Assembly: GCF_003918875.1 (NCBI RefSeq)
Contig: NW_025767083.1
Location: 930,001-994,000 of the forward strand
From: Haliotis rubra
Taxonomy: Eukaryota
Direction: 5' to 3'
Length of the DNA: 64,000 nucleotides
Translations under genes and position numbers: made by a program
Notes under the pieces: model-generated
Databases searched by the model: none
The model's input: only the letters and a program-made list of their open reading frames with translations
Told to the model about the DNA's origin: nothing
Shown here: positions 1,671 to 62,286 of the stretch, piece by piece
Position numbering within the stretch: position 1 is the stretch's first letter
How the letters are laid out: each line of letters starts with the position of its first letter

Positions 1671-2739
1671 CTGTATGTGGGATTGGTGGAATCGTGGCTA
1701 CTTGGTGAGGCTTCGTGGGCCCGTTGCCCTGGGTTACTGAGCCGGATGTTGGCGCAACACCACCTCCCATTCCTTCAATTTCCAAGGTTGTTTTGGGGGT
1801 GATATCACCCGTTGTGTGAGCCACGAAGTCAAGACATAGTTGGTCCCCGACATGCTCGTCAGCGTTCCATGCTTTGTTGGTCAACACGTACTCCTTCCCC
1901 CCATCTGCCTTTTTAGCATCCGCCGTCCATATCTGTCAAGTTAGAAAAAATATGACAGATAGTCCAGCGTATAATGGACGCTATGGTAACTAGCGAAACT
2001 AAAGCTCAGACTCAGGGTCCACTCCTTAATCAGGCAGATTGTAGGTACATTTTCTAGTATGTTCTTCTGCTGGGCCGATCACATTGCAAATGACAGGATA
2101 AGAACCACGTAAAAATTTAACATATGTTATATTTGGGATTACACTTTCTGATTAAAGTACAGATTCTAGTACCTTTGTTGGGTGGAATCCCACCCGGGAC
2201 TCGAACCCACACCCTCAGAGTCAGGCACCGGGACTCAAACCAACAAAAGTACTAGAATCTGTACTTGTAATCCCAAACATAACATATGTTACATTTGGCC
2301 ACTTTCTAAATGGCATCTCGTAAAATTTGTTGACTATATTATGTACAGTGTATCATGATGTATCAGTGCAAACTACCCTGTGAATGTTTCGCGTATCGCA
2401 TCCAGAAGTTTAACGAAACGTTACGCCATTCTGTATTATGCATATGCGTTCAATATCTTTGAACATATTTTCCACATTGTTAACGCCAGCGAAAACGTAT
2501 TACTTTGTAAATAACTGGGAAGGTGGGATATATATTTGTATATTCAGTTCCAACAACGAGTTATTTACGTCAAGGCTGTCGACGGCTTGGTCAAAACGAA
2601 GATGTGCTGTCCAAGAGTGCAGTTCCTTTGTGATACCAATGCAGGCCTTTGCCTGGAAGCCTCCGTTCCAGTGGTTGTTGAGGGGGACGTCCACCGCCGA
2701 CCCCACCGCCAGGACAGCCGCCACGAGGAATACGTTCAT
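1671..2739 (-). CDS. GH9 cellulase gene A, 5' part only: signal peptide, CBM2-like module and linker
   Basis: Exons 2739-2569 ([28 protein letters not shown]...) and 1932-1671 (IWTADAKK...PPIPHTG), GT-AG, phases 0/1. Nearly identical to gene B exons 18144-17974 and 17581-17320. No catalytic exons are in the window. Confidence 0.9.
2119..2320. mobile_element. Inverted-arm element with tRNA-like B-box (family T), copy 1
   Basis: Arms gggattacac...gtacagattctagtac / gtactagaatctgtac...gtaatccc; internal ggttcgagtccc B-box on the minus strand; homologous copies at 43875-44093 and 54185-54291. Confidence 0.75.
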
Positions 2740-2974
2740 CGTGACTGAAAGGAAATACACCAACATCAACATGTATGGAGGTCAATTCCGGTGCTGCCGT
2801 GATATTGCTGGTATATTGCTAAAGGGCGGCGTAACAACACTCACTAGTGCCTTTAAGCATGCATATTGCTTTGCTACTGGTCGAAAATGACAAAAAAACT
2901 AAACCTCAAGCAGATAGTGTGTTATACATTCTTAGATATGTTGCCGCATATCATAACTACTTCTTAAGTACGTA

Positions 2975-3300
2975 TCCCCGACCGCGTCATACCAAAAGAC
3001 GTTAAAATATGGTACTTGTTGGTCCCTGCCTGGCGTTCGGCATTAATGGGTACAACAAGGACTGGTCGGCTCGGAGTCCGTGTAATGTGTCTAAGTGGGG
3101 TATTCATGCTTAACTGCGGCATTGTATCTCAGTGGGCTAGCACTATAAAACCAGCTTCCAGTCTGGGATAGTACAAGCAGCCGCACTTACACATACACAC
3201 GCATGCACGTCGTCATATGAGCGAAATATTCTCAAGCACGACGTTAAACCCAATTTCACCTCACCTCACCTCACCTCACCTCACCTCACCTCACCTCACC
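2975..3300 (+). mobile_element. 5'-truncated SINE with V-domain-like core and (TCACC)n tail
   Basis: Core gtcataccaaaagacgttaaaatatggtac...ccctgcctggcgttcggcattaa resembles the V-SINE central domain (from recall). 13-bp TSD tcttaagtacgta at 2962-2974 and 3301-3313. Confidence 0.75.
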
Positions 3301-58600: not shown

Positions 58601-61600
58601 GGAGTCTGCTGCAGTGGAAGGAGGCGTACGTGGAGTCCGGCCAGTACGACAACATGCTGGACAGCATCAGGTGGCCGCTCGACTACCTCCTCAAGTGTCA
58701 CACAGCCAAGGACGAACTCTATGTACAGGTAAGTCCCTTAGAACTTGCTATTTGGTTTGTTGTTTACGTCCGCACTCACCAATATTCAGCTATATGTAAA
58801 TAATCGAGTCTGGACCAGACAATCCAGTGGTCAACAGCATGAGCATCGATCTACGTAATTAGGATACGACCAATCGATCACGTTAGTCGCCTTTTTGCTG
58901 GGGCTAATTCAACTCACGGGCTTGTGAACTACAGTACAGAGGAGTCCCCTAGAACTCTATGTACAGATGAGTCCTCTGGATCTCTATGTACAGGACGTCT
59001 CCTAGAACTCTATGTACAGATGAGTCTCCCAATGGCCGCTCAACTACTTCCTCAAGTTCCACACAACCAAAATGGAACTCTTAAACGCCAAATATGAAAG
59101 AACGTATCTGTTCTTCGCTACATTGCGTTTACAAGTGTCTGCTGTATATCGAAGGTTGGAAACGGAGGGGCAGACCACAGTTTCTGGGGCCGACCGGAAG
59201 ACATGAAAATGGCCAGACCCGCGTTTAAGATCACCCCTTCAAAACCCGGAAGTGACGTAGCTGGACAAACTGCAGCTGCCTTTGCCGCAGGATCGATGGC
59301 ATTTAAGGACAAAGGTAGAGAATAACAATGATCTAGATCTCTCTGATCAGCCGGAATATGCATAATGACGTTAGATAGTTTCAAAAGCATTCACCTGATC
59401 ATCCCAATCATATGTTTTACAATAAAATATGTATATGTTACTATGTAGCACGATACAAGAGAATCGAGACCCTCTGTATAGATCTTGTCATGATCCTTTC
59501 GTTGTGGAAAGTAGTTGGGTGAGATCTGAACTTGTCAGCTCTTGCAGTGCACATGGTAACATTTGAGACCCACTTTCATCCCACGTCTTGCTGTGGCATG
59601 ATTGGTTATAGCTTATATGGGAATACGATTTAACGTGTATAAATATGTAGGTAAAATAGTCACTTGAAATCTATTTACGTTTTCACTACTGCAGTGCCTT
59701 TTAAATAAACCAAGCTTCTATTGAGATGGCAACAGCTATGTTTTTGTCATCATCAGACGCTGCCTATTCCAAGACACTGTTGGACCACGCTGTACAGCTG
59801 TATGACTTCGCCATGGCCAACAAGGGACGATACAGCCAGAGTGTTCCAGCAGCCGCCCAGTTCTATCCGTATGTCATATATTCCCTTATGCAAGTTGGGT
59901 TATACTGATGGTGATGTAACGGCTAGATATCCATACAGTGTCTCTGTGTACCATTTAATGAGAAAAAACAAACATGTATCTGCACACAGGTCCACGAACA
60001 ACACGGACGAGCACGCCTGGGCCGGACTGTGGCTGTATCAGGCTACTGGAGACCCGAAATACCTGACGGAGGCTGAGAAATATCACCAGCCTGGCGAGGC
60101 GTGGGGCATGAGTTGGGACGACAACCAGGCCGCCAACAATGTACGATATTTTTACATGCACTTGAGACAGGGCGCATGTCTGACATATTTATGCATTCCT
60201 TGCTTTCTATCTTGTTTGAGTGAGGATCAAAATGTAAGAGGCCTATGGTCGAAGGAAGTATTTAACAAAAGGAAGCTAACTCTAACCTGCCTTCCTCAAG
60301 ACGGATTTACAAACTACAATTCCCAGGCCTTCTTCCCGAGTTAAACCTGACGGATGGTACCATTGATGCGCTACATTACAATTACGAACATTTGATGGCA
60401 GTTAATTCATGGGGAAACTATATGTTTACCATTTATCTACTGTGAACTTAAGTTTTTCAGCTTAAGGAATTTCACGTTTTTCTCATACGAGTCGGTGTTT
60501 TCAAATTTGGGCAGATCCTGTTCTACAAGCTGACCCGTAAAGACATCTACAAACAGGACCTGGAGGACACATTCGAGAAGTACTGGTTCCCCAATCAGGT
60601 CATTAAGTACACACCTAAAGGACTGGCGTGGAGGCTGCAGTGGGGATCTCTCAGATATGCATGTAGGTGTAATGTCTCAAATATGCATGTAGGTGTAATG
60701 TCCCAGATATCGTGTTGCTTTAATGTTTCAGATATGCATGTAGGTGTAATGTCTCAAATATGCATGTAGGTGTAATGTCCCAGATATCATGTTGCTTTAA
60801 TGTTTCAGATATGCATGTAGGTGTAATGTCTCAGATATGCATGTAGGTGTAATGTCCCAGATAATGTAATGTCCCAGATATCATGTTGCTTTAATGTTTC
60901 AGATATGCATGTAGGTGTAATGTCTCAAATATGCATGTAGGTGTAATGTCCCAGATATCATGTTGCTTTAATGTTTCAGATATGAATGTAGGGGTATTGA
61001 CTGAGATATGTATATTGGTATCTCTTTGCTTTTGCAAATGTATGTGTCTAAAGGTTGAATGTCTGTATGAAGGTCCGTCAACATTCCTTCGAGACAAATG
61101 TATTTCACCCCACAACACATGCTCCCATGTCTTGCCAATATGATGATTTTGTATGGTAAACAGTGGCACAGTGAATACATCATTCTAACGTGAAGATGTG
61201 AAGAAAGTTTCATCTCCATTGGCTTCTACATTCACCTACAGCCACAACTGATGTTTAACTGAAATGCTAGCCGCAATTGTAGAAACTCACTTCAATATTA
61301 GATTGGATCTACTTTTAGCCAACATGGCGTTAGCAGCTCTGATGGCTGCAGAGGCAGGAGTGAACCCGGACAAGTACCGAGAGTGGGCCATGAGTCAGAT
61401 CCACTATGCTCTGGGAGACACTGGATTCAGCTATCTCATTGGGTTCGGCAAGAACTACCCACACAGTCCCCATCACAGATCAAGGTAGGAACTGTCATAA
61501 TGATGAATATCACAGTGACGAAAGTAGGAATTGATATCGACCTTGGTTAACAATATGCTTAGGGATTATATCTTGAGAGTTTTCTTGTGTGGAATAATTA

Positions 61601-62286
61601 CAAGTTATGACGGAACTTCAGTAGTCACGGTGCAACTTCAGCTCCTGTCCCTGGCCACCGGCTCCTTGTGGACCCCAGGTGATGTCCAGCCACGCCCCTA
61701 ATGTCCACACCCTGTACGGAGCTATGGTAGGAGGGCCCGATAGCAGTGACGGCTACAAGGACGACCGATCCAACTACGTCAACAACGAGGTGGCCTGTGA
61801 CTACAACGCTGGGTTCCAGGCCGCTGTGGCAGGTGTGTGTTTCTTGTTGCCCCGTCCAGTAAGTGTCACAAACATAATTAAACTAAGACTTATCTGAATA
61901 ATAATTTGCACCAGGGAATGTGTGGTACTTACATGTTAGCAAGCTGTTTTTTTCCATTTCATTTACAGCAGAGTTTGAACAAAGATGAAGCATATCGACA
62001 TTTCACAATCTCCATGTTTTCATGACTAAAATGTGTTAAATTCTTTATTCGATTCACCATCAGTTATGTAAACTAGTGATATTATATAACTTCAGTGTAA
62101 TGGTAGTACCTCTGTTGAGTTATAAGTCCATAATACAGCCCATGTGCATTTTATACCTCAGTTGTGAGGTCTGCTGACCCACACCATACCAATATGTCCT
62201 CAATACACGCCATGTGTTTGTTTCCTCGATCAGGTCTGAGATCTCTTGCCAATAGAAACATCCACCCGGAACAGCTGGGACCCTAG
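55628..62286 (+). CDS. Divergent GH9 endoglucanase gene E: signal + CBM2-like + linker + second CBM2-like + GH9, 725 aa
   Basis: 13 coding exons: 55628-55801, 56323-56623, 57088-57248, 57559-57763 (GC donor), 57997-58167, 58544-58728, 59155-59314, 59757-59868, 59990-60140, 60515-60662, 61319-61484, 61642-61832, 62234-62286 (2178 nt, in frame). Same intron positions as B/C/D in the GH9 part; WYDAGDHVKF, PHHR and NEVACDYN intact. Confidence 0.92.
57452..57491. repeat. (GAT)n microsatellite, intronic
   Basis: Direct reading. Confidence 0.9.
58754..58895 (-). mobile_element. SINE family 2 fragment
   Basis: aatcgagtctggaccagacaatccagtg...gttagtcgcct. Confidence 0.75.
60648..60995 (+). repeat. 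25/26-bp minisatellite with a 77-bp higher-order unit, derived from a gene E splice donor
   Basis: atatgcat|GTAGGTgtaatg occurs 8 times, starting at the true donor 60662/60663. Confidence 0.9.

Follow-up and report, generated by a model that had tools for sequence, protein, structure and literature searches.

Two divergent sub-arrays of GH9 endoglucanase genes at one Haliotis rubra locus, and the deletion of a carbohydrate-binding module in one of the genes

How do endoglucanase genes with no, one and two carbohydrate-binding modules (CBMs) come to lie side by side at a single locus of an abalone? Abalone depend on cellulases of their own to digest seaweed, the abalone hepatopancreas has been described in the cited literature as rich in cellulases, and abalone cellulolytic systems were called poorly explored in 2024 (PMC11025796). 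We analyzed a window of 64,000 nucleotides of Haliotis rubra DNA (scaffold QXJH01000402.1 of assembly GCA_003918875.1, record positions 930,001-994,000, so that a record coordinate equals the window coordinate used here plus 930,000), which has no N runs and a GC content of ∼41%. Four GH9 endoglucanase genes (B to E) are complete in it, and a fifth, A, is represented by its 5′ end. A preliminary description of this DNA had proposed a five-gene array whose graded series of CBM architectures was built by local gain and loss of modules. From the observed gene structures, domain architectures, deletion, phylogeny and synteny we favor another reading, to which we assign a probability of roughly 0.85, namely that the locus is a conserved Haliotis GH9 cellulase cluster that arose by tandem duplication, consists of two divergent sub-arrays, and includes one gene, C, that has lost its CBM by deletion.

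On the minus strand, a six-frame all-against-all comparison of the window revealed three sets of paralogous coding segments and a left-edge pair; the plus strand had one set. A single segment gave an immediate Pfam GH9 match, and in a representative search the closest relatives of one exon were mollusc GH9 proteins of Mizuhopecten, Saccostrea, Mytilus, Plakobranchus and Batillaria. Splice models were built with a scallop CBM2-GH9 protein (P0026) as guide and a junction scorer limited to GT/GC-AG, and ambiguous junctions were read manually. Every intron in the five models is GT-AG with the sole exception of intron 4 of E, a GC-AG pair with donor GCAAGT at 57764, where the RefSeq protein agrees with the junction. 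All frames are open, without an internal stop in any of the five models. A word search with P0026 brought up many Haliotis proteins, and in local BLAST the spliced models equal H. rubra RefSeq proteins exactly, the GC-AG intron included. Genes A to E are already annotated in RefSeq.

Gene C lies at 27832..34504 on the minus strand and has nine exons (34504-34297, 33881-33694, 33341-33182, 32939-32828, 32003-31853, 30465-30321, 29689-29518, 28252-28062 and 27896-27832) that encode 463 aa, in which a signal peptide is fused directly to the GH9 domain; it is identical to XP_046580067 (P0349, 100% over 463 aa). Genes B and D, also on the minus strand, have 11 exons each and specify a signal peptide, one CBM2, a linker and GH9. 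Gene B (7715..18144; exons 18144-17974, 17581-17320, 16828-16655, 15508-15321, 13456-13297, 13140-13029, 11955-11805, 9302-9158, 8928-8757, 8429-8239 and 7779-7715) encodes 596 aa, all of them identical to XP_046580064 (P0288). Gene D (44389..51364; exons 51364-51194, 50646-50439, 49237-49064, 48490-48303, 48072-47913, 47289-47178, 46927-46777, 46209-46065, 45420-45249, 44842-44652 and 44453-44389) encodes 578 aa that equal residues 16-593 of XP_046580066 (P0206) at 100%. The Gly/Pro/Thr linker of B is 38 aa long (9 Gly, 6 Pro, 6 Thr), and that of D, at 20 aa, is exactly 18 shorter, as the preliminary description had stated. The linker of A is identical to that of B as far as the window reaches.

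Only the 5′ part of gene A is in the window (1671..2739, minus strand). Its exon 1 (2569-2739) encodes the signal peptide and the first half of the CBM2, and exon 2 (1671-1932) the second half and the linker; the resulting 144 aa match residues 5-148 of XP_046580062 (P0207) at 100% and form the N-terminus of P0207/P0290 (XP_046580061-63). We considered whether A is a CBM-only fragment and rejected this, as GH9 exons are present beyond a 4.8-kb intron: exons 3-11 lie to the left of the window and are intact, and the coding sequence of 1791 nt has no internal stop. Gene E (55628..62286, plus strand) has 13 exons (55628-55801, 56323-56623, 57088-57248, 57559-57763, 57997-58167, 58544-58728, 59155-59314, 59757-59868, 59990-60140, 60515-60662, 61319-61484, 61642-61832 and 62234-62286) that encode 725 aa comprising a signal peptide, a CBM2, a 51-aa linker, a second CBM2 (exons 3-4 of the spliced model, 57088..57763), a 17-aa linker and GH9. 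It equals XP_046580060 isoform X3 (P0241) at 100% over 725 aa. The longest RefSeq isoform of E (P0301) takes its last exon from the next gene downstream.

Pfam scans with PF00759 for GH9 and PF00553 for CBM_2 (gathering score 24 bits) were performed on database proteins identical to the spliced models, and CBMs were counted with a mollusc CBM2 profile built from mollusc CBM2 modules recognized by Pfam. The GH9 domain scored 474-488 bits over profile positions 1-444 in the proteins identical to A, B, D and E (474 bits in B, 478 in D). In exon 1 of C the GH9 match begins at residue 20, directly after a 15-residue stretch, and reaches 64 bits over profile positions 1-55. By the mollusc profile A, B and D each have one CBM, C has none and E has two, so that the 0/1/2 architectures of the preliminary description are real; its account of the sequence proved accurate in each detail that could be checked. 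Full-length Pfam CBM_2 matches above the cut-off were obtained for A (29.9 bits), B (30.4 bits) and D (27.0 bits). The half-domain exons taken alone gave Pfam CBM_2 matches of only E ∼0.05, because an intron splits each CBM.

The second module of E required closer comparison. Pfam CBM_2 scored 28.3 bits for the whole E protein, summed over two modules that the mollusc CBM2 profile places at residues 17-115 (5e-36) and 171-268 (2e-34). The second module alone scored 21.7 bits, below the cut-off, and a phmmer search with it against PDB returned chance matches only. A profile of 12 orthologous second modules aligned to the first-module profile with an HHalign probability of 99.5% (E = 2e-23) and matched the Cellulomonas fimi Cex CBM2a (1EXG) at E = 0.008, while the first-module family profile matched the solved CBM2a structures 1EXG and 6QFS at ∼2e-6. 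On these profile comparisons we classify the second module of E as a CBM2 that is homologous to the first modules. Endogenous GH9 and CBM2-GH9 proteins are known in molluscs. Of 185 retrieved proteins with a length of 400 aa or more, most of them mollusc GH9s, 40 had no CBM, 103 had one, 37 two and five three. GH9 proteins with no, one, two and even three CBMs are thus common across molluscs.

Gene C has lost its CBM recently, by a genomic deletion of 1,713 bp that joined the signal-peptide codons in frame to the catalytic domain, and in this respect the preliminary proposal of module loss at the locus was correct. Its sister copy is P0352, a CBM-bearing gene on the unplaced H. rubra contig QXJH01001612.1, which has 98% amino acid identity with C in the catalytic domain and is its sister in the tree described below (support 96). 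Alignment of the 5′ region of C to this copy places the deletion junction in exon 1 at 34460..34461 (minus strand), with flanking identities of 98.75% up to 34461 and 97.1% from 34460. The sequence absent from C extends from within exon 1 through intron 1, exon 2 and intron 2 to the first few bases of exon 3. Beyond exon 1 the exons of C align throughout with B and D, and the mollusc CBM2 profile found no CBM2 in C. The same junction is present in two further copies on QXJH01001612.1, which argues against a one-off assembly error. A word search for a short open reading frame elsewhere near-identical to the C fusion exon found none, the best match being 74-81% identical, and was uninformative.

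Other abalones carry in this position an ortholog of HdEG66, the GH9 cellulase of Haliotis discus hannai, which is reported as a purified abalone cellulase (Suzuki et al. 2003, as cited in PMC4123733). The H. rufescens ortholog is 593 aa long, bears a CBM and is encoded immediately upstream of a fused model that has the B ortholog as its second half; in H. cracherodii the CBM-bearing HdEG66 ortholog is flanked by the D ortholog and, at the position of that model, by a 1196-aa gene. Gene C is the positional counterpart of these CBM-bearing genes, its CBM having been lost on this H. rubra scaffold through the 1,713-bp deletion. Orthologous slots of the cluster were found in both species, and the head-to-head pair of D (minus strand) and E (plus strand) recurs in H. 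cracherodii.

A maximum-likelihood tree of 63 catalytic domains separates the locus into two lineages. A, B, C and D group with HdEG66 in a Haliotis-only clade (support 100) whose sister is formed by patellogastropod one-CBM genes; within it, A groups with an H. asinina protein and not with B. A to D belong to a Haliotis-specific expansion of the characterized HdEG66 cellulase. E belongs to a separate, deep, gastropod-wide clade (support 100) with Patella, Lottia, Littorina, Aplysia and panpulmonates (Biomphalaria, Lymnaea, Physella), in which 19 of the 22 sampled members have two CBMs. Because E falls in this clade, the two-CBM form predates the gastropod radiation and was not built at this locus; E is an old paralog placed beside the HdEG66-type genes rather than a step in a local series.

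The layout of the scaffold follows the same division. At least seven GH9 genes are present at the locus, a minus-strand [A B C D] and a plus-strand [E F G] group, and the two sub-arrays diverge head to head from the D-E intergenic region (51365..55627). The two additional genes are of the two-CBM E type, follow E on the plus strand of the same scaffold beyond the window, and occupy window-equivalent positions 65143-73736 and 77855-81503, the latter at the scaffold end. The previously described span runs from the exon 2 donor of A (1671) to the stop codon of E (62286). Five GH9 genes do lie in the window, four of them complete and intact as had been described, but the number five is set by the window edges. 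No other gene was called in the fetched scaffold stretches, which include the B-C and C-D gaps only partly; within the window these two gaps hold only repeats and a transposase remnant. The genes form a tandem paralog array in that homologs are adjacent, no unrelated gene intervenes, and synonymous divergence (dS) between neighbors is 0.17-1.47 (A-B 0.17, B-C 0.42, C-D 0.21, D-E 1.47; for B-D it is 0.61). Ratios of nonsynonymous to synonymous divergence of 0.13 for A-B, 0.24 for C-D, 0.17 for B-D and 0.27 for D-E show purifying selection on the window paralogs.

We propose that tandem duplication built a conserved Haliotis cluster of endogenous GH9 endo-β-1,4-glucanase genes. The minus-strand sub-array would consist of four HdEG66-type genes, A to D, whose ancestral form probably had a signal peptide, one CBM2, a linker and GH9. 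The plus-strand sub-array, E and the two genes outside the window, would be of a type that is ancient, occurs throughout the gastropods and has two CBM2 modules in tandem.

Regarding function, the catalytic Asp pair (in DAGD) and Glu (in the NEV..DYN motif) of GH9 enzymes are known from bacterial and termite structures. In an alignment B to E all retain an intact WYDAGDHVKF (which contains DAGD), HHR and NEVACDYN, and the N-termini are signal-peptide-like, in line with the earlier view of a single locus of endogenous mollusc GH9 genes. Identity to HdEG66 (Q75UN9, P0200) is 81% for B, 85% for D and 91% for the catalytic domain of C, and this 81-91% identity points to endo-β-1,4-glucanase activity. 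A to E would be endo-β-1,4-glucanases secreted from the digestive gland that cleave β-1,4-glucan by the inverting GH9 mechanism, with the DAGD Asp pair acting as base and the NEVACDYN Glu as acid. The predicted mature masses before glycosylation are 49.4 kDa for C, 61.5 kDa for D, 63.5 kDa for B and 78.4 kDa for E. We infer that these genes are expressed and their products secreted and active, and that some division of labor may exist among them.

The CBM2 would hold the enzyme on cellulose via a flat aromatic face. In CBM2a modules cellulose is bound by three coplanar surface aromatics, W17, W54 and W72 of Cex. Aligned to Cex, this triad reads W-W-W in A and B, W-G-W in D and HdEG66, W-Q-W in module 1 of E and W-W-D in module 2 of E, so only A and B carry all three Trp of the Cex CBM2a platform. 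In module 2 of E an Arg follows the first Trp by three residues and the Cys pair is absent; like its orthologs, the module reads D-W-G-N-R-F, without the third Trp. Xylan-binding CBM2b modules reportedly have two surface Trp and an Arg that turns the first of them (Simpson et al. 2000), a pattern which we take to be similar to that of E module 2 (two Trp, Asp, and Arg at W+3). Because the CBM aromatic faces vary between paralogs, it is plausible that their ligand preferences differ, and binding preference would probably change from one paralog to the next.

A rival reading, that of the preliminary description, is a purpose-built cocktail, in which stepwise local gain and loss of modules produced a graded 0/1/2 series, CBM-less enzymes serving soluble glucans and CBM-rich enzymes insoluble cellulose. 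Besides the differing aromatic faces, this proposal can draw on the three architectures standing side by side at the locus and on the gut fluid of Aplysia kurodai, which contains GH9 enzymes of 45K, 65K and 95K that differ in specificity, Km, Vmax and products (Tsuji et al. 2013, PMC3675134). We nevertheless consider it rather doubtful: the two-CBM form of E is older than the gastropod radiation and not derived from its neighbors, and the loss in C is recent, has so far been seen in H. rubra only, and affects a slot in which other abalones keep the CBM. Of the interpretation put forward in the preliminary description, then, the single endogenous locus, the three architectures and the loss in C stand, while local module gain and the graded series do not, as the clade of E already had two CBMs.

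Several observations weigh against our preferred reading. The CBM-less form of C was seen in H. rubra only, and the annotations of H. rufescens, H. cracherodii, H. asinina and H. discus contain no ∼460-aa or CBM-less protein of this clade. In H. asinina a fused gene model is ambiguous about the CBM; we had considered this model (P0285) as a conserved CBM-less ortholog of C and dropped it, as its sequence has a different, partial CBM start. One CBM-less copy on QXJH01001612.1 projects with frameshifts, because of which C could be a young, possibly decaying or polymorphic variant. Two sequencing runs aligned to C consist of DNA-type unitigs that cover introns and show no exon-exon joints, joints being found only in repeats. 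Because the variants in both DNA runs match no assembly copy, these runs are from another individual or a close relative. Their unitigs end at the 34461 junction or nearly span it, and the one that spans has only 29 letters on one side and was not counted. Finally, parts of the locus recur on two unplaced contigs at 95-99% identity, which makes the true genomic copy number uncertain.

Much of this would also fit if C were a deletion allele of the HdEG66 ortholog, neutral or slightly deleterious, or a young copy of it on the way to becoming a pseudogene, with the CBM-bearing P0352 as the functional version. The 98% identity of P0352 to C in the GH9 domain with the CBM kept, the 97-99% identity of the flanks across the deletion, the exclusively CBM-bearing genes in the C slot of other Haliotis and the frameshifted copy all point that way. 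On the other hand, all nine exons of C are preserved, its splice sites are canonical, signal peptide and catalytic motifs are retained, and the frame stays open over 463 aa; three assembly copies share the junction, which is in frame; the region upstream of C is intact; and CBM-less GH9s are ordinary genes in other gastropods. On balance we regard a decaying C as possible and its opposite as the better guess. A related and equally tentative idea is that C and P0352, a very young pair, are both expressed, as alleles or as recent paralogs, and form a natural experiment with and without a CBM in an animal cellulase. If so, the in-vivo value of an animal CBM2 would be directly testable, and module loss would have been caught while segregating.

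The unplaced contigs also bear on whether some of the copies are redundant. QXJH01001960.1, which matches the end of the scaffold at 98-99.4% identity, is probably a haplotig. QXJH01001612.1 (38342-119060) contains at least three tandem units of ∼33-38 kb each, every one with a fragment of D exons 9-11, a gene resembling C, and a fragment of B exon 1 that abuts, at 17959, an inverted 5′ part of E starting at 59682; one unit has a CBM-bearing gene and two have the CBM-less junction. These units are either a real segmental duplication or an assembly tangle. That some of the five window copies are themselves haplotype or assembly duplicates is very improbable, for although these redundant contigs with their chimeric units exist and the exact E protein appears under two RefSeq accessions on two contigs, dS between the copies is 0.17-1.47, self-comparison finds little A/B or C/D similarity outside exons and near flanks apart from shared SINE-like repeats, A groups with an H. 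asinina protein and not with B, and both H. rufescens and H. cracherodii have orthologous slots. The five genes of the window are real paralogs, and the concern about haplotype mis-assembly raised in advance applies to the extra copies on the two unplaced contigs.

The non-coding part of the window is rich in repeats. A minisatellite with a 30-bp unit and ∼28 copies (TRF) lies in intron 2 of D (49612..50445, minus strand). It begins at the exon 2 donor, and the donor motif is repeated in each unit; only the first donor keeps the frame open. Another, with units of 26 and 77 bp (TRF), starts at the exon 10 donor of E and extends into intron 10 (60649..61010, plus strand). Four intergenic minisatellites, at 23091-24418, 25811-26859, 38296-39337 and 54931-55333, have periods of 29, 25, 48 and 38 bp, with as many as 42 copies, and the first three also occur, diverged, in the unplaced contig copies. 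Remnants of Tc1/mariner-type transposases were found in the C-D spacer (41419..42054, minus strand; Pfam DDE_3 3.5e-09, weak HTH_Tnp_Tc3_2) and in a B intron (6116-6343, plus strand; Pfam DDE_3/HTH_Tnp_Tc3_2). Two families of short interspersed repeats are scattered over introns and spacers on both strands, the first at 3460-3708, 6819-7031, 14076-14326, 30548-30801, 31513-31756, 37583-37708, 44099-44197 and 58752-58872, the second at 7352-7534, 14383-14559, 28966-29171, 34910-35211, 27142-27276, 56696-56794 and 63845-63997. Because the depth of the DNA-run unitigs at several of these sites reaches hundreds of thousands to millions, the repeats must be very high-copy.

As a whole the locus is ordinary and mostly known, an annotated cluster of a known enzyme family, and our understanding of GH9 or CBM2 is unchanged by it. 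The sole new element, a modest one, is the recent and precisely mapped CBM deletion in C together with its CBM-bearing sister copy, which offers a simple system for asking what a CBM does in an animal enzyme and a possible marker for feed-efficiency work in aquaculture. The scale of the locus is corrected to at least seven genes in two divergent sub-arrays. No earlier description of this cluster was found in our literature search, most subscription journals being outside its scope. A survey published in 2020, which covered seven mollusc genomes but no abalone, reported that GH9 is expanded, that its genes are "mostly dispersed", and that CBMs occur in 8.2% of GH9 genes (PMC7560691). The Haliotis locus is the opposite, a conserved cluster of at least seven genes and two architectural lineages.

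How does the cluster compare with systems already known? The RefSeq annotation of GCA_003918875.1 (XP_046580058 to XP_046580067) holds proteins identical to B, C, D and E and to the N-terminus of A. It names them only "endoglucanase E-4-like" or "4-like", and the cluster, the CBM counts and the deletion are undescribed there. HdEG66 belongs to the same Haliotis clade and shares the architecture of A, B and D, with a signal peptide, an N-terminal CBM2, a linker and GH9. In contrast to HdEG66, described as a single cDNA or enzyme, four tandem paralogs are present here, and the positional ortholog C is without a CBM. E has its counterparts among the two-CBM2 GH9 "endoglucanase 4" genes of Aplysia californica (P0276), Biomphalaria (P0272), Patella (P0257) and H. 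rufescens (P0295), which are orthologs or paralogs of ∼720-745 aa with two profile-detected CBM2 modules; in the literature searched we found no biochemical characterization of any two-CBM2 gastropod GH9. Compared with the Cex CBM2a, the modules described here are animal ones, each is split by an intron, the Cys pattern is different, and D, HdEG66 and E module 1 are without the middle Trp.

A functional parallel is offered by Aplysia kurodai, where three GH9 size classes occur in the digestive fluid of one gastropod, as they would here with predicted masses of 49 (C), 62-64 (D, B) and 78 kDa (E). The Aplysia enzymes differ in being known from peptide fragments only, with no gene structures or CBM assignment. 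When their peptide tags were compared with the architecture classes the tags were not diagnostic, and by analogy the size classes may map onto CBM number. Plant GH9 enzymes fall into classes A, B and C in which the CBM is a C-terminal CBM49 (PMC5977491, PMC4981690). They are likewise split by the presence or absence of a CBM, in another lineage and at the other end of the protein, and the resemblance to the abalone cluster is one of analogy only.

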